Positions 43,146 through 55,400 of a DNA stretch of 64,000 bases are shown here, one piece after another. Under the pieces are notes generated by a model that saw only the letters and a program-made list of their open reading frames with translations, did not search any database and had not been told where the DNA came from. This DNA comes from Podarcis bocagei (lineage: Eukaryota), in assembly GCA_964188305.1 (NCBI GenBank), contig OZ076888.1; one strand, 5' to 3'. Position 1 is the stretch's first letter; each line of letters starts with the position of its first letter. The position numbers and the translations under genes are program-made.

Positions 43146-46100
43146 TAATAATCATAGAATCATAGAGTTGGAAGAGACCACAAGGGCCATCGAGTCCAAC
43201 CCCCTGCCAAGCAGGAAACACCATCAGAGCACTCCTGACATATGGTTGTCAAGCCTCTGCTTAAAGACCTCCAAAGAAGGAGACTCCACCACACTCCTTG
43301 GCAGCAAATTCCACTGTCGAACAGCTCTTACTGTCAGGAAGTTCTTCCTAATGTTTAGGTGTGATTTAATTACACCTTATTTTAATAAAAATAATAAATT
43401 AAAAATAATAAAAATAATAAATTAAAGACAGCTGAGAAATGTGGGTTACAGTCTCAGAAGCCAAAATAGAGTTATTACACATATCTCCGTTACTGTCCCT
43501 GGGCTTATATACTGTGCTTGCTTCCAAAATCTCTGTCTTCCATTCCTTACTTTTCCACCATCTTCTGCAAAATAGATTACTGCATTTTGAACACCTGTTT
43601 CTTGGATGTAAGGTATAATAATTATGAAAGTGCAACCATGTTTGATTTTGCAGAGTTTATTTTGAGCACAAAATTAGGTAAAATGGAGTCTAAGTGGCTC
43701 TTTATGGTTCTCACTGGGGAAGAATGTAAGTGGAGCCCTGCAAGATCAGATCAGAGGCCTATCTAGTCTAGCCTTCTTTCCCACAATGACCAACCTATAT
43801 AGAGCCCATGAGAGGAATTGAGTGCAGTAGAACTTTCCCTCTCTTGTTCCTCAGAAACTGGCATTCAGCAGCATACAGCCTCTGATACTGCAGGAAATAC
43901 TGCCATTGTGACTAGTAGCTGTCTAATTAAAATGGCATGGTCGTGTATGTTTAGGCTAGTCTGTCCACTTACCAATCATTTGGAGATTTCTGTGATTGCA
44001 TCTTCTCTTAAATAAGTACATGTAACGTTCCATTTTTTCCTTTTGGAAAAAAGCAATGTTCATACACTACTTCAGTTTGGCCTGTACTTTTGTCCGTGCT
44101 TCTCTGATTGCTTGGTTTGGACTAGACCTTTTCTTTTGTAATTCCCTTCTGCAGGTGCACTGAAAGAAATAACAGAAATTACATCACAGCTTCAAAACAG
44201 TCTCATCCGTTTGGAGAATTTCCAGAAGCTAACAGAGTTACAGCACGACCTGCTTGGCATTGATAACCTTGTAGCAGCTGGCAGAGTAGGTAGTTCTTTC
44301 CATATTTTAAGACCCGTGTACTTCAATTGTTTCTGACCTTTCTTCTTGCTTTCTTCCTTTATGGGATGATGGCTTTAGAGGTTTTACTGGTTTATTTCAG
44401 AACTAGGGAAATCCAGTATGTTATTTCCAAAAAATATATCTCAATATTGAAACTCTCATGAATAACCATTCAAAAATTGTATTTGCATGTACTTACCGAG
44501 ATGTTTTAAAGGTTGGCAAAACAATGTGAGAAGAGGCTCCTTTGAAGGGCCTTCATTTCAGGGATCATAGGCATTGTTTCAGTTTTCCAGTCCTTCAATT
44601 ACCGTATTTTTCGCCCTATAGGACGCACTTTTTCCCCTCCAAAAATGAAGGGGAAATGTGTGTGCGTCCTATGGGGCGAATGCAGGCTTTCGCTGAAGCC
44701 TGGAGAGCGAGAGGGGTCGCTGCGCACCAATCCCTCTGGCTCTCCAGGCTTCAGGAAGCTCTGCGCAACCCTCGGGAGACCGGCTCCGAGGGTTGCGCAG
44801 AGCTGCCTGCAGTCCCGGGATCAGCGCAGCTCTGCGCGGCCACCGAGAGCGGGACACAAAGTCCCGCCCAGCTCCGGATGGCCGCGCAGAGCTGCCTGCA
44901 GTCCCCGGCTCAGCGCAGCTCTGCGCGGCCACCGGGAGCCGGACGAAAAGTCCCGCCCCGCTCCCGATGGCCGCGCAGAGCTGCCTGCAGTCCCGGGATC
45001 AGCGCACTTCTTCCCATAGCCAGCCCCACAAGCTTGGGGGACAGCGGGGAGGCAGAGCACGCCTTCCCGCTGTTCCCCGACCTGGTTCTTCCAGCCCCGC
45101 ACCTGGGGGGGAAATTAAAAAAAAATTCTTTATTTCCCCCCCAAAAAACTAGGTGCGTCTTATGGGCCGGAGCATCCTATGGGGCGCAAAATACGGTAAT
45201 TTCTGATCCACAGAGGTAACAGGGACCAGCACAAGTATGATGCATGCATGGGTGTGCAGGCTCTCTTCATGTATTCATTCATCATGGACAAATCCTAGGG
45301 AAAATAGTACTTGCCCCTTAGACATTTTGAGGACTCTTAGTTGTGTACCACAGCACTATAAAGAGCTTTGGAAACTGGACAAACATCCTCCCACTTACGC
45401 ATGTTCCACTCACGTGCGATTGCATATATGTGCAGTGCCAAAAAATAGATAAATAGACTCATATAAATGAATATAAATAAATATAAATAGACTCAAATGG
45501 CGGGAGTCAGCTGGAGAGTTTTTGACGCTTGTAAAGAAACCCTCCCCGGAGCCCAAAGAGGACATCAGATAGCACAGAGGAAACCCTGGGGAGACTGGAG
45601 GCACAGCAGGGCTTTGTGTAGGCTGCTCAGCCTCTACGCCAAATGGCTGATACCTGGGGTAGCGCAGCAGCAGCCACATTCCAGTGCATCCTCCTACCTC
45701 CTGCCAGCCCCAGAGCTTAAACTCACGTTGAAGAGAGAATTGTATGGAGAGAGAGTGAGAGTGAGTGCTGGAGAATTGGGGTGGGGGGAGATTTAGAGGC
45801 TTTGGGGTGGGGAGAGATTTAGAGGCTTTTTAGAAGGTACTCTCCACTTTACGCAATTTCACTTATGCGCACAGGGGCCTGGAACATAACCCCTGCATAA
45901 GTTGGGGGATGCTTACATTTTATAAATGGAAGAGGTGGTCACATAATTTGTGGTGAGCCTGGTCATTCTTAGTTTTAATAGAACACTAACTGAGTGGCCA
46001 AGTTGTAATAGCCTAGCTGTTTTAAATAAGCTTGCTCTGGTGGCCTAAATGGCTTTTGTAGCTTAGTGGCACACTTCCAGCAGAGAACTGGAAGTGGTGC

Positions 46101-46465: not shown

Positions 46466-49400
46466 TATGTGTGAGAGAGGGGGAAGAGTATGGTGTGTGC
46501 CTGTATGTCTGGCATTGTGCTTACTGTATGTGTCCTGAGTGGGATCTGTATGTTTAGTACATGTATATACATTGGCCATGTCCACCACTGGCATGTAGGC
46601 TTTGGAGAGGTGGGTGACTGTAAGAGAGTCCTCGGGCCAAAAACAGCCCCACCCCTGAAGTAGAGAGTGCTGCATTTCACAGAAGAGCCATCAAATGTAC
46701 TAAAGTTTTGTGTATTTTTCCCCACAGGAATTTATCCGGGAAGGCTGCTTATACAAGCTTACCAAAAAGGGTTTACAGCAAAGGATGTTCTTTCTGGTGA
46801 GCTGATGCTTTTGATCAAAATTTCAACTCGTAATGAGGTTTCTGGAGCCCATTCCCCTGTAGTAGTTTGATTGGGATTGGTCAAGACTTAAGTTTCCTGT
46901 ACATATTCTGAGCAGTACGGCCTTGTTATTTGAGCCTCGGTTGTTTCACAGCCAAAATATAAAGAAGCCTTTGTATACAGCATGGAACTTTTCAGGAAAT
47001 GTGAGGCAGTTGCATAGGTGGGTTCCCAAACCCTGACTTTATCCAAGCTCAGATTCTTTGCCTCCTCATGGGGCTGGATCCTCAAGAGATAGATAGCAGA
47101 ATGGCCCTTGATCAGTAACTGCTTGTCATGATGGAACAGTTGTGGACCCTCCTTCCTTGGAGATTTTAAAGCAGAGGTTGGATGGCCATCTGTCATGGGT
47201 GCTTTAGCTGAGATTCCTGCATTGCAGGGGGTTGGACTAGATGACCCTCAGAGTCCCTTCCAACTCCAAGATTCTTTTGAGTCTATGATGGCTGTGTACT
47301 TCATCCAGTATTGAAAGCAGAATGCCTCTGAATGCCAGTTGTTGGGTAACACAAGTGGGGGAGCGTTACTGTGCTCATCTACTGCATGTGGGCTCCCCAT
47401 GAGTATCTAGTTGGCCTCTAAGAACAGTTTGCGGGATGAGATACATCTTCGATCTGATCCAGCAGGGTGGTTCTCATATTCTCAGTTTGCCCTGTGGGCA
47501 GCTAATTTGTATGTGCTGTATGTGCTTGTTCCTCATCAGATTTTGATGATGTCAGGATCCGTTCCTTAAAAGGGCTCCCAAAAGGAAAGAAAGTGGCTTC
47601 TGTTAGTTGGGCAGTCTCTTTGCTTGATCCTAATTCTGCACAGAAAAACTACAGGGTTTTTTCCCTTGGTGTTGAAGGACTCTTTGTAATCATGTATGAA
47701 CTGAAAACCGGTTGGTAATAATTTGTGCCCTATAATTACAATGAGAAACTGTAAGCATAGTGTAATGCAGATATCTCGAGTGGATAAAAGTTAAATACTT
47801 TTATAGAGAAATATAACAGACAGTGATAGTTGGTTTTGTTACTGTTATGCTTTACTGTGAATCACTTGGAGCACAATTTAAAGAGAAAACTTAAATTGGC
47901 TTGCAAATTTATTTGGTTTGCAAATAAAGCTACAAAGGGGTTTATCCAATGGTTGTATGTGTGGAGGGCAGCTTGCCAACAAATTTCGCTATTTTTCTCT
48001 TCCCTCTCTGTGGCCTCTGCAAAGGTTTGGGGAGCCCTCTGAACAGTGTGAGCTGTATTGTTTGGTACCGCAATAGGAGGGATAAATTGTGTATGGTTTG
48101 TCTGCCTGATTCCAGGCAATTTCAAATTCCTACTGCAGCCCCAAACAACACAGCCTCACTGTTCCAGAGGAACCCCCAATTCAATGGAGAGGATTTTCAG
48201 AGGAGCTCAGGGGCTCTAGAGCAGGAGAAGAGAAAAAGACAATAGTTGCTTGAGCTGCTTTCTACTTATGCACTCTTTGGGTGTAACCCAAGGATTGTGA
48301 CAAAAGATAGAATTGCCTTTTTCCCTAGTACCTAAATGATTTTGTAAACTTTTCCATGCCTCAGTTTTCAGATATGTTGCTCTACACCAGCAAAGGAGTC
48401 ACGGGTACCAATCAATTCAAAATTCACGGCCATCTCCCTCTGCATGGGATGCTGGTGAGTGATACATCACACAGCAATCAAACATCAAAATAATAAAATG
48501 TGTTTCATGTTAACCTGGGCTTCCTCTTTATACTGAACTTTTAAGGGACTCTTGCGAAATGTTAACAGTTCTGGTTACTGTAGTTTTCTCCAGTCATTAG
48601 TAGACACAGATTTTTGGGTTAGATTTAAGTAGTCAAAAGAACAAGCACTGCCAGTTTTTTGGCATTGGAGTAGCTGGGAAGACGAGACAACTCTTGATTG
48701 TGCTTTTGCTATTTTCAAGGCTAGCTGGATGTCCTAATTGGTGTTGCTTCCACACCAAAATGCAACATTCCCTTCCACTCCTTAATGGAACTTTTTTTAT
48801 GTGTCTGTGTTTGATTTTCAGCTGATAGTCCTCGATCCTCCGGTGAGTAATATGACAGTGACTACTATGCTTAGCAGCTGCTGAAGTGACAATGCAATTG
48901 TAGCTGATAGTTTTCCCATTAGAAACAAAATAGAAACAAAATACTTTTAATGTAGCTAGTTGCTGTTGTCAGACCATTTCTTTTAGTTCCTAGTGTAGAT
49001 GTGTGTGTTGTTGCTCACTGAGTGATGAATAAATTTCCTTTATTGTAGGTGGAAGAGAGCGAAAACGAATGGTCTGTCCCTCATTGCTTTACCATTTATT
49101 CAGCTCAAAAAACCATAGTAGTAGCAGCAAGGTAAGCATTTTCTCAGTGGTCAGTTGTGAAAAGGTAGGAGTGTTAAAGCACTGGTAAAATAGGCGTCTT
49201 TCAGTGTGTGTATATGCTACTATACCCCAGGCTACGCAATGTGGGAGACCACACACTCCCTGAGTCATTATGCAGTCATCTGTTGAGGCAAAACCTGATT
49301 TCCCCATGGGGTAGTGCTCCAAGCTTACATTAAAGTGCAATAATATGTTGCTTCCTCTCATCTTTATGAGACTTCAGATTTCAGGAGGAATAGAAAAAGA

Positions 49401-52400
49401 TCCCGAACTGTGTTGTGGTTTTATCAAACCTGAATTTGTGTGGAATTTAAAATTGTTGAGGCAAGCTTCTGCAGTTGCCAGAATGGTAACATTGACTGCA
49501 AATTTTGTTATTTCAGTGGGAATTTATGGAAACATGAAATTGCTCTAAGTATGGGTCAAGCAGTGCTTTTCTTGAACCATAAATCACAAACAGCAGCTGA
49601 GCTCTGAAAACGTGCTTAGCTATCATTCCTGTCTCTATTTTTCAGCACTCGTCTGGAAATGGGGAAGTGGATGGAAGATCTAAATATGGCAATTGAAATG
49701 GCCAAGAAATTCACTGAGAAATCAGAGATGTTTCTAGAAAACTCAGTGTGCAATCGTTCTAACAGTGAGTAGCTTTCGTGCCACTTGTGATTAGTGATTC
49801 TTGGCTAGTTGTGCACACTTCAGGCTTCTGAGATGGAAATGGTATAGATTACGCAGCCTTCAGTCTTTTTCACGAAGTAACATTCCATACCCTCTCTGAT
49901 GCTCCAGATATTTCAGGCTTGGTAAATAAGAACTTCCAGCTGTTAAAGCAATAATAATGAAGTTTATAGTGTGTAATCCTTCCTTACCACCCTCTTACAT
50001 AGGAAAGTATTCATCCTTTTAAACCACAGTTCACTTACCAATCTGTGGAAGTCATTGAAATAATATCCTGTGTACTCCTGAATGTCTCATCATCTATGGA
50101 TCCTCCCCCACCACTGGGCCACTGAAGCACACTGTGGCATTCCTCAGGTGGAAATTATATATTTCTGCTACAAATCAAACCCTTCTAGCTTCTGAGCAAA
50201 CTTTTCAATATTTTCCCTATGTAACAGAGTGGGACTTTTTCCTATGCAATAACTTTGAGGTGTCCTATCCTTCAAATGATCGATTATGAAGGTTGTGGGT
50301 GTCAGAAGGAGAGTAACCCATGCATGCCAATTCCTTTTGTGAGGGGATGATGCTATTATACGTCAGCAATCCTTGCCGCTATCACCACCCCTGTGGCCAC
50401 AGCCTGTTAAATGTTTGCTCCCTTCTCCCCCCTCAGGATCCTCAGATGAGGTATCTCTAGAACAGGAGTCCGAAGAGGACATACATTCTTCTCGTAGCTC
50501 CCTGGACAGGCAGAGCCACCACCGTGCCAATACTACCATGCATGTGTGCTGGTACCGCAACACCAGTGTCTCCATGACAGATCACAGTGTGGCCGTCGAG
50601 GTACCCAGCAGCAGAGCACATATCACTATCACTTTCACTTACCACTCTGTCTGTCTTGGTTGCTGGTTTCTCTGCACTGTATACATGTGTGCGGTTTTAA
50701 CACCCCCATTTCCTTCAATAACGTCAGTGGTCTTGTGTGAGAGAGCAAATGAATGAGTAACCACAAGACGTCTGAAGATGTTCTTTGTATGTGTGACTGC
50801 ATGTTTCCATCATGTTCTCAACAAGGGTGTGCTTTGGAGAAGAAAAAAGATTAAAAGGGGGGGCCTTCCTTGATATATCAACAGCTGCCATTCACACTAA
50901 AAAGCCAATGAAATAAATCGGCTTTGGGGTTATGAAACCAAAAGTTTGAGATCTTGCCCACTGAGAACCCTGTTTTAGGTAAATTTGTTAAATCTTTGAT
51001 TTCTCCCCAAAGCACCGTGGCCCCTTGCACTGCTGATCTTAGGACTTACAAATAATGAACTTCATAACATTTTTTTTCTTTTTTCATACTATTTCTTTTA
51101 ACAGACCTTTTCGTGTACTGCCCTTTCTTGTTCTAAATCACCTTTTTCTCTCTTTTTCTCTTTGCCCTGCACCCTCTCTGCTCAGTTTTCTGCTCTCTTG
51201 CTGTTTCTCCAGAGCTTCCTCCTCGCTATTTGCTGGGCCAGACTCAGCGGCCCAACACAATCACCCATGTTTGCTGGTACCGGAACCAGAGCCTATCCCT
51301 GTCTGATTATTTGTGTATGATTCAGGTAAAGCTGCTTCACTCACTCTCAGTATTGATAGGATCTATGAAGACGGTCATTTTCTACTTGTACCATCTCGTT
51401 ATAGCTCTCTTAAACACTGTTCTAATGTGCAGAAACAAGGATCTAAAATATTGGAATGAATGGTAAGACATCCTTTAAGTCTCTTGCAGAAATCAGCCAA
51501 ATTAATCCCTTTATTAAGAAGAACCCTGGATACAGATGCCATTGTTTTGATGCATTTCATTTATCCTGTAGATTAGATAACAGCAAGATAGGTTCCTTCT
51601 CCCTCCTGTGGGGCTTACTCTTCACTTTACCAGCATGTTAACTTAAAAGTGGCATTGCTGCCATGTGCTCTGCAGGGCTTTTTACTGTGTGCTTTCCCTC
51701 AACATTTTCTGTCTTCTAGTTGTATTGTCTCCTTAACTAAGAATGCAAGCTCTGTGTGTTGCTTACTGGTTCTTAGCATGTTGTAGACAACAAAAAGCGG
51801 GACTTAAAGTCGCACAGTTAACACAGCACGGACATGAATCAGTTGCATCCATAATTGTTCTACCCTTTCAGAGGAGGAAATGCAGTACGCAGAGTTATCA
51901 CTGTGAAAAAGGGGTGTGTGCACAAATGGACATTACATTAGTAGCTGGCATACCTGAGAGAAGACACCTTGGTGCAGGATGCCCTTCAGAAGTTGCTAGA
52001 CACCAACTCCCCTCAGCCGCAGCCACTTTGACCAATGGTGAGGGGTGATGGGAGTTGTAGTCCAACATCATCTGGAGGGCACATTGGGTTCACCTGCCTT
52101 AGAGCCTTTTTGGTATGATCAGGAAAAGCCTGACTCAAACAACCTTTAGTGGAAACAGTGAAATATCCTATCTGGACTGAGTGGATCTGAATGGGGAGTA
52201 GGTAGCTCTGCCATAGAGCAGGAGTTCCTAAACTGCCGTCTGTGGACTACCTGTGGTCCATGAGGTTTTTGCAGGTGTTCCACAGCATGGCTATATTAAA
52301 CAGACATTCTATGGAATGCAAATTGTAATACAATAAACTAGAATATAAGAAATAAAAGCAAGAAAAATGCAATTAAAAACCATACAGCATCTGGCACGGC

Positions 52401-55400
52401 ACATTACAGTTACTACAAGTGGAAAAACCAGTTAAGTGGTTTTCAAGTTTCGAAACCACTGCTACAAACTGAATAAAAAAATAATGCTGTCTCACTTCCC
52501 ACCTCCTTAAAAACCTGGGGGTCAAATGCTAAAAAAGTAATAAATAAAAGGACTGTTCGGGCAATGGGGTGTTTTTGCTGGTCTGCCAGTAAAATAAATA
52601 TAACATACACAATGCTTGACAAGCACTCCAGTGTTGTAGTTTCAAAGAATCCCAAATAATTTGTTGGGGGGGGGGGTTGTAATTTTGAATGGCTCCAAAT
52701 TACAGAACCATGGAGTTGGGTGGTGGCTTTATATTGCTCAGTCATTAACTTCATCACAGGGAATAGCCAATAAATGTCTGTGTTACACACCCATGCTCCA
52801 ATATTGCGCTGTCTGGAAAAAATAAGGAACTTTTCTAACTGCACTTGGCAAATTATATCACCACCATAAAAAGGTAACTTGTATACTTCTTGCACAAAAT
52901 ATCTAATCGTACAAAAAGGCTCTGAAGCAGTCTTTCTCAAATTCAGTCATCCCCTAGAAAAAGTTTTGTTTTTTGAATCTGCAATGCAAATTTAACGGCA
53001 GGTTTTTGTTCAGCAATTGTGGAGAATGACTACTAGTCACTTACACTATATGTTCCTCTCTTCCATGTAGAACCAGCTATCGGGATACCTACTGAGGAAA
53101 TTCAAAAACAGTAACGGCTGGCAGAAGCTGTGGGTTGTTTTTACAAACTTCTGTTTGTTCTTCTACAAGACGCACCAGGTAAGATGGATGTGGCACAACT
53201 TCAAGATGGTGTTAGGCATACATAGGAATGAGATGCAATATGCCTTGTGAATCCATTCCTAAAGGCTTTCTTCATTCTTTGGTACATTTTGTGAGTGTTG
53301 CTGCTGTCAGCAACGAGTTGAATGCTCCAGCGCAGCTTCAGCCAGTAGTCATTGGCACATCTTTCTGGCAATTCACTAGGCATCGCCAGATCACAGTAAA
53401 CTAAAATTGATTGTAATATGAATGGCATGTCTGGTGCTCTTTAAAAACACCTAGTTGGAGAAAATTGCAGACAGGGTTCCCAATTATGGCTTTAGTTATG
53501 CTTTCCAGCCGGCATACAATACCTAGAACTTGGGAGAGCTAGTTCTCTCTGACTGGTATATTTGTGCTGGCTGGGAACCGAGGGTTTTTGTTTTTACTTG
53601 TAACTTCATGTATTAACTCAGTGGTACATGGTGGGTTTTAGTACAGGCAATGAACATTTTGTGCAGGCGTTCCATTCCTGACCCCTGCGTCTATGGGCGG
53701 AGCGCACAAAAGCCTGCTCTGCCTCCATTCTGCTCTCTTCTGGCTCTGAAAGGACCTGTGTGTCAGTGGTCACGTGGCAATTGGGCGCATGCGGAATGGT
53801 TGCTGCCTGTATTTTCTTTGTAAACTGCCCTGAAAACGGTGGTTGAAGAGTGGAATGGACATCTGTTAAATAAAGAATAAAACTTGGCTGTTTTTTCAGG
53901 ATGATTATCCATTGGCCAGTTTACCACTTCTTGGTTACACTGTCAGCACACCCGTAGAGGCCGATGGCATTCAGAAGGATTATGTCTTCAAACTGCAGTT
54001 CAAGTCCCATGTATATTTCTTCAGGGCTGAGAGCAAGTACACCTTTGAGAGGTAAGTGTGCTTCCTAGACATAATTTGCAAAACTAATTCGTTAATGTTC
54101 TCTACTAACTCTCCTGGTAATGAGTTGAGGAAACTGCTGGAATTTCACACAGAAGTCATGCTTTCTGTGGCCTTGCCTATATTAATGAATGAGATAACTT
54201 TTGGTGGGTTCTGCTAACTTCAAAATCTGTCAGTGAAAGAACTCTGTGCAAAAGTAGCTCAGATTGAAGTTGTACATATATGGAAGTTTGCACATCACCT
54301 GAGAAATCCTCTCTCTCTCTCTCTCTCCACCCACCTGGAGCAGGTGGTAGAGAAGTGAAGGCCTAAAACTATATATATGGAAAAGCATCCCCCCCAAGGC
54401 CTTTCCCATTTTTCCAGTAAGGGGAGGACTATTTACAGCATTAGGAAATTGCAATTCCTCTATATTGTAAATATGTACAATTCAGATCCATTTCTGTTTG
54501 GCTAAAGAGATACTCTGGCTGTGTTCACACATACCATATGGTTTAGTGGAATAAGCCTGAGTGAAGCCTTGTTTTACCAGTTCTTACTGATAAAAGTTTT
54601 TGTTTGTTTTTTTATAAATTTTATTTATATCCCGCCCTCCCCAGCCAAAGCCGAGCTCAGGGCGGCTAACAACAACAAAACTTGTTGATGACTGAGACGT
54701 TGTGTGTGGTTGCAGGCAACGTGCACTGCGATCAGTGATGGGACCAGTCTAGGCTTTACAATAAAGATTCTTTAGGAAGATGTGCTTAATGTCCCAAACT
54801 TGATGGTCATTCTCCATAAAGATACAACTGTGCAAAATCACTAATGAATAGCACCACTGACTCTACTGAGTCTTCACCATCTGGGCTGGGTGAGACAGTA
54901 AAACTGCTCATTGGCAGCAGGAAAACCAGGAGGAATTTTTTTAAAAATTAAAATTTAACTTGGGGAGACCCTTCCTTTTGAGTTTCTGTGCTCTTCATAA
55001 AAGTGATTTGGTGTGCATATTGTACTCATCTAGGCAGTGGAAAAGAGGGGCATTAACTGCCAGTCCCCTTCCTTGTGGGTTAGGACTCCCTTCTATAACT
55101 CTCCCTTTGCACTATAGTAACAAACCTAGCATAATTGTACAGACCTTTGTTCAAATTATCAGGTTACTGTTGTGATACTGTGGCTCCTTCTTTACAGTAA
55201 GTTAACTTTTAAGTGTTAGTCTGAGTGTTAATCTTACTAAAATCCTCTGCAAAATGGAAAGCGAAATATTAATATTCCTACTAAAAACTATTATGTAGCA
55301 CATTCAAAGAATGATAGTGAGTAGGTAACGAACTAGGGCCATGACAGTTGACTTTTTTTCTCTCGTCAGGTGGATGGAAGTAATAAAGAGAGCCACAAGT

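Follow-up and report, generated by a model that had tools for sequence, protein, structure and literature searches.

Tandem linker exons in FARP2

The window, the whole 64,000-nt stretch of Podarcis bocagei contig OZ076888.1 analyzed here, carries on its plus strand exons for the DH-PH-PH unit of a gene that, judged by DH-PH-PH scores, is the orthologue of FARP2. An orthologous bird fragment of 301 residues scores 360 bits against FARP2 and 300 bits against FARP1, and the DH domain of a fish cDNA contig scores 330 versus 256 bits; the paralogues are not separable by exon 24a alone (63.2 versus 62.8 bits). FARP2 and FARP1 act between surface receptors, plexin among them, and Rac/Cdc42 signalling in axon guidance, dendrite growth, and bone remodelling.

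Two adjacent exons, 24a and 24b, lie between the end of PH1 and the start of PH2 (Table 1). The window and a fish genome contig (L002) share the tandem order 23-24a-24b-25, 24a and 24b being direct neighbours in each with no constitutive exon intervening, and gene models from a sturgeon and the bamboo-partridge contain both exons. Further upstream, 44530–45216 is stop-free for 150–229 codons in all three plus-strand frames and holds recurring peptide strings, suggesting an internal tandem duplication within an intron; the stretch is GC-rich, with a GC content of 0.485 over 44001–46000.

Table 1. Features of the PH1-PH2 linker region of FARP2, in window coordinates.
Feature	Position	Strand	Remarks
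FARP2 exon 23 (end of PH1)	49646..49764	+	Ends in phase 1; donor serves 24a or 24b
Exon 24a, 164 nt, default PH1-PH2 linker exon	50437..50600	+	Acidic Ser-rich half, then conserved core; PDB match and RNA joints
Pyrimidine-rich tract and acceptor upstream of 24b	51036..51185	+	Candidate PTB-type repressor binding region
Exon 24b, 140 nt, alternative PH1-PH2 linker exon with PPxY	51186..51325	+	Phase 1 in, phase 0 out; RNA joint and conservation
Unit drawn by the sequence-only reading, the 3' 113 nt of exon 24b	51213..51325	+	AG 51211-51212 is exon-internal, in codons S-P-E
Exon 25 (start of PH2), acceptor common to 24a and 24b	53071..53178	+	Starts in phase 0

Exon 24b resembles 24a at the 3' end only, where 13 of the last 26 residues are identical in a gapless match; this match, first noticed in a reading of the sequence alone, was reproduced here, as was the remark that within H-V-C-W-Y-R-N the DNA differs only by gtg/gtt and cgc/cgg, both silent. 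A comparison of the 37-residue translation of 24b with 177,635 distinct PDB sequences returned FARP2 and FARP1 only, at residues 372–397 of 4gzu (FARP2, E 2.7e-4) and 4h6y (FARP1, E 9.5e-4). Exon 24a matches the FARP2 entry 4gzu over residues 348–399 (E 8.6e-17), and the 24b match falls inside this region. Because the PDB matches are confined to FARP2 and FARP1 and lie at homologous residues, the similarity between the two exons is beyond chance.

The unit originally drawn, 51213–51325, is flanked by AG at 51211–51212 and GT at 51326–51327 (GTAAAG) and has an open frame. It belongs to a real exon and its 3' end is right, but it begins 27 nt too late: an RNA joint, a fish cDNA, and cross-species conservation all place the acceptor in use at AG 51184–51185 and hence the exon at 51186–51325, and the 27 extra 5' bases are in frame. 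The accompanying argument from reading frame holds nonetheless, as 164, 140, and 113 all leave a remainder of 2 on division by 3, although the length of 24b is 140 rather than 113 nt. The account of what the swap would change was wrong, since it was built on a junction off by 27 nt. Exon 24b is 8 residues shorter than 24a, not 17, and the acidic segment of 24a is replaced by a proline-rich stretch instead of being simply dropped.

Exon 23 indeed leaves in phase 1 at 49764 and exon 25 is entered in phase 0 at 53071, as had been proposed. The frame continues into PH2 in 23+24a+25 as well as in 23+24b+25; inclusion of both linker exons leads to a stop inside 24b, and omission of both leads to a stop 14 codons into exon 25.

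Conservation and selection on exon 24b

Proteins with the 24b peptide were sought in two word searches, the first starting from the 109 codons of open frame that surround 24b and both covering proteins of 0.55–1.75 times the query length, and in an exhaustive HMMER run that compared the 46-residue exon with 1.84 billion representatives. Word searches and HMMER returned about 30 such proteins at 90% clustering; the HMMER matches, taken among 50% representatives, were short ORFs only, which is what a merging of isoforms into the longer 24a form would produce. Most matches are ORFs on unspliced contigs and hence are translated through the splice sites. When 28 of the proteins were aligned on the core, column conservation was 0.9–1.0 from acceptor to donor and 0.2–0.4 just outside, the conserved span running from V-F-x-S-x-A-x-S-P-E through the final Q. 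Named carriers are the birds Leiothrix and Bambusicola, the marsupial Gracilinanus (XP_044539982.1), a sturgeon, and three teleosts. A Xenopus protein (P0025), whose genomic locus is not on record, is 56% identical to 24b. The matches from the word searches and HMMER include a marsupial but no placental mammal, which is a lead towards a possible absence of 24b in placentals.

At the DNA level, the window, a bird, and three fish sequences agree in the acceptor (cag/TT) and donor (CAG/gta). Changes among window, bird, and fish copies of 24b lie mostly at third positions, which account for 20 of the 23 differences between two fish and for 22 of the 35 between window and fish, the latter comparison comprising silent changes in 18 codons and 8 changed residues. 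Window and bird DNA align at exons only, and the block over 24b (51149–51338) is at 91%, versus 85% for exon 25 and 87% for exon 26. This block reaches into both flanking introns, 51149–51185 upstream of the exon being still alignable and the rest of the intron not. Conservation of an exon together with its flanks typically marks a regulated alternative exon. Taken on these comparisons, 24b is under purifying selection in its own frame, the one read only when 24a is skipped. The sequence-only reading had named stops or lost splice sites in orthologous copies as evidence that would count against it; in the copies compared, the frame and both splice sites are intact.

These comparisons bear directly on whether 24b is an unused, decaying duplicate whose junction reflects splicing noise. 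That reading would account for the zero 24b reads in three of the four RNA runs described below, but we find it hardly credible: the frame and splice sites are intact, and a near-identical peptide is found in fish, sturgeon, birds, marsupial, and the window, between introns that are unalignable. A neutral copy would not be expected to persist over such a time.

Exon 24b in RNA and gene models

RNA from a close relative of the source lizard, a species 1–3% different from the window, was surveyed over 48300–54200 in four runs with no tissue labels. X23 and X24 are raw-read RNA runs, and X1 and X5 are contigs, X5 being taken as RNA from its spliced contigs. Exon joints 49129>49644 (cut +2), 49764>50437, and 50598>53069 (cut +2) occur in all four runs. 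X23 and X24 each have 8 reads over 49764>50437, with 3 and 4 reads, respectively, over 50600>53071; none of their 16 junction reads uses 24b, and depth is zero over 50664–51845. The X1 contigs follow the 24a path only, with no use of 24b. X5 has a 24a-path contig at depth 46.8 and a second contig that opens with 30 letters from the end of exon 23, spliced to 51186 with GT..AG ends and 24a skipped. The depth of this second contig, 9.2, is a whole-contig mean, and the joint itself may rest on few reads.

Three joint predictions made from the sequence alone can be compared with these runs. The one given as 49764>51213 was wrong by 27 nt, the joint seen in X5 being 49764>51186; 51325>53071 was not seen in the four runs; and the expected absence of a 24a>24b joint agrees with the data, no 50600>51186 being seen in any of the four.

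In the X5 24b contig the donor at 51325 is unused and the sequence continues unspliced to 52070. Alternatively, 24b might start an alternative last exon, running past 51325 to a stop at 51464–51466 and an intronic end, to give FARP2 without PH2. Besides the contig, which is unspliced over 51186–52070, the X5 depth of 5–11 over 50781–52328, compared with 0–5 in the other introns of the stretch, would fit such a form, and a further 46 codons of the read-through frame are free of stops. The peptide encoded by the read-through is nevertheless unrelated between species, whereas the GT donor shows no variation, and in the fish cDNA and gene models 24b continues into exon 25 by splicing. Coverage in X5 also extends over the intron sequence that precedes 24b, suggesting unprocessed RNA, and neither a poly(A) end nor piled-up read ends were reported in the four runs. 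We therefore regard an alternative last exon as very unlikely; the X5 coverage over 50781–52328 could stem from RNA not yet processed or from a read-through product that terminates downstream of 24b. An interspersed repeat with inverted arms of 39 nt occupies 51980–52081, with very high depth on both strands and many loose ends at 52041–52080 in all four runs; the X5 24b contig stops there.

Complete use of 24b is seen in fish. A fish RNA contig from Logan (SRR21813220_50964, here L003; 2769 nt; protein P0030) joins exons 23-24b-25-26-27 through to the stop codon, without 24a, and its DNA also spans the DH domain, PH1, a 21-nt microexon, and the 3' untranslated region. Sinocyclocheilus grahami UniProt entry A0A672SK83, named FARP2, has the order 23-24b-25 with the microexon present, and a gene model from the goby Knipowitschia caucasica has 23-24b-25 without it. 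A duplicated gene copy, with 24b now constitutive, could be the source of the fish 24b transcripts. Two further gene models were dropped as evidence of use, that of Leiothrix because the 1.4 kb that precede 24b on its contig contain no 24a, and that of Gracilinanus because its 2-kb contig lacks 24a. In L003, one intron of about 80 nt is retained between two PH1 exons at 560–650, splitting the ORF in two.

The microexon (L-I-V-L-D-P-P), which lies in PH1, is at 48822–48842 in the window and at approximately 732–752 in L003, and the main joint in the reads of the close relative, 48453>49048, skips it. It occurs on the same molecule as 24b in two of the three fish products, which hints at shared, possibly neural, control.

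Exon 24a is thus used without 24b in X23, X24, X1, and X5, and 24b without 24a in L003, two fish gene models, and the X5 joint 49764>51186. The data show a real exon 24b that is under selection and can follow exon 23 directly, 24a being skipped; its continuation into exon 25 is shown in fish. Selection in its own frame, the X5 joint, the fish 23-24b-25 products, and the frame test together support the original proposal of a mutually exclusive tandem-duplicate pair, and we consider it highly probable that 24b is a genuine protein-coding FARP2 exon, a tandem copy of 24a and its mutually exclusive partner.

An alternative is that 24b is a poison exon that, when included after 24a, shifts the frame and lowers FARP2 output through nonsense-mediated decay. 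A stop does arise inside 24b when both exons are included, and strong conservation of exon and flanks is also typical of regulated poison exons. However, third-position changes and a conserved peptide are found in the frame used only if 24b directly follows exon 23, and the joints observed go from 23 to 24b without 24a, no 50600>51186 having been seen. A pure poison-exon role is disfavoured because the conserved frame of 24b is that of direct 23>24b joining, and we consider it very improbable.

Linker content, regulation, and age of the pair

Both exons share a core before PH2, R-x-N-T-x-x-H-V-C-W-Y-R-N-x-S-x-S-x-x-D followed by six residues, and differ in their first halves, that of 24a being acidic and serine-rich and that of 24b rich in proline and bearing an invariant L-P-P-R-Y. 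All 26 sequences spanning the site, the marsupial's included, have P-P-R-Y; neither 24a nor the 24b-like unit of FARP1 described below contains PPxY. PPxY is the consensus of class I WW-domain ligands, and the P-P-R-Y of 24b is a putative motif of this class. AlphaFold2 gave the fish 24b protein a pLDDT of 35.4 alone and 36.7 with a 7-row alignment, values too low for a usable model.

The 150 nt upstream of 24b are 73% pyrimidine and contain 14 sites of the UCUU/CUCUCU type, versus 1–4 upstream of four neighbouring exons; ORF translations show that sequence upstream of 24b is CU-rich in other species too. Such a tract fits an exon that would be held silent by PTB-type proteins. No Rbfox site (UGCAUG) lies within 200 nt downstream of 24a or 24b, and a search of 49765–53070 for competing RNA pairings of the docking/selector kind yielded weak inverted repeats only (14–39 nt, 71–93%), none of them convincing.

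We propose that exon 23 would be spliced to either 24a or 24b and next to exon 25, and that single-choice messages alone would yield full-length protein. Exon 24a would be the default form and 24b a minor or tissue-restricted one, with the long pyrimidine tract presumably silencing 24b in most tissues through a PTB-type repressor. The swap would presumably leave the fold of the autoinhibited DH-PH-PH unit as it is and act on its partner binding or phospho-regulation.

The FARP linker was reportedly found to be structured by He et al. in 2013. The DH-PH-PH units of FARP1 and FARP2 are autoinhibited (PMC6041286, citing He et al. 2013), and the linker within the unit is structured (PMC6041286). 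Release of the autoinhibited unit is still an open question, and FARP1 and FARP2 have even been proposed as pseudo-GEFs (PMC6041286). PDB entries 4GZU and 4H6Y agree with the window gene in gene, domain order, and the core before PH2; they carry the 24a linker, whereas the 24b form adds PPxY and loses the acidic serine cluster. The linker swap may affect the autoinhibited DH-PH-PH state. A deeply conserved second linker offers a natural variant for comparisons of GEF activity and binding, and the invariant PPxY a concrete handle for a partner search.

Vertebrate mutually exclusive pairs derived from tandem exon duplication are known from human catalogues (PMC5740500, PMC8373072, PMC9741552). 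The catalogued pairs are like 24a/24b in consisting of adjacent homologous exons with the same phases, in which one exon keeps the frame and both or neither break it, and in being ancient, with isoforms identical save for one homologous stretch. Exons 24a and 24b differ from them in that the last 26 residues alone are alignable, the first halves being unrelated and the lengths 164 and 140 nt. Neither FARP1 nor FARP2 appears in the main text of the three papers or in the supplementary text of two of them, within the portions accessible, and no mutually exclusive FARP exon pair was found in the literature searched. Exon 24b is present in databases, as fish gene models, yet undescribed in that literature. 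With this pair, the few known ancient tandem-exon substitutions gain a case that had not been listed, and studies of zebrafish, chick, and lizard FARP2 should ask which linker form is present.

A weaker 24b-like unit also occurs in FARP1-type loci of teleosts, among them L004, L006, L007, and L008. In a Logan ORF with a FARP1-type 24a (L004), the unit takes the position of 24b, at 1816–1947, with exon 25 following it as the next exon. A pyrimidine tract and an AG precede 128 nt that fit the frame and encode the string C-W-Y-R-x-x-S-L-S-F-S-D, with a GT exactly six codons past S-D, as in 24b. The unit is kept in six more fish ORFs at 57–90% identity, and the variable sites across four loci number 6, 8, and 16 by codon position, a distribution suggestive of coding. 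If the unit is real, the duplication predates the split of FARP1 and FARP2.

A further parallel is exon 5a/5b of the SCN-alpha genes, a mutually exclusive pair older than its paralogue family and with unannotated copies in distant species (PMC12772994). From the part of that source available, the FARP case is similar in that a 24b-like unit is also present in teleost FARP1-type loci, and dissimilar in that the coding constraint in FARP1 is only suggestive and no RNA of the FARP1-type unit was seen.

A fuller history is possible, and we put it forward tentatively as the less probable side of the argument. The pair would predate the FARP1/FARP2 split in early vertebrates and would have served for about 450 million years as a PH1-PH2 linker switch, between an acidic, phosphorylatable version and a PPxY version used together with the microexon in a restricted tissue, where it would recruit a WW-domain partner or alter how autoinhibition is released. 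Placental mammals would later have lost the switch, and this loss would explain why work on mouse and human never met 24b.

An intronic block of AAGGACCATTGATCCAATGTCCTTTGTCTT and following sequence, at about 1690–1745 of L004, is conserved in four fish FARP1-type loci. ORF callers read this block in three different frames across species, so that it is conserved as nucleotides, and it may be a splicing control element.
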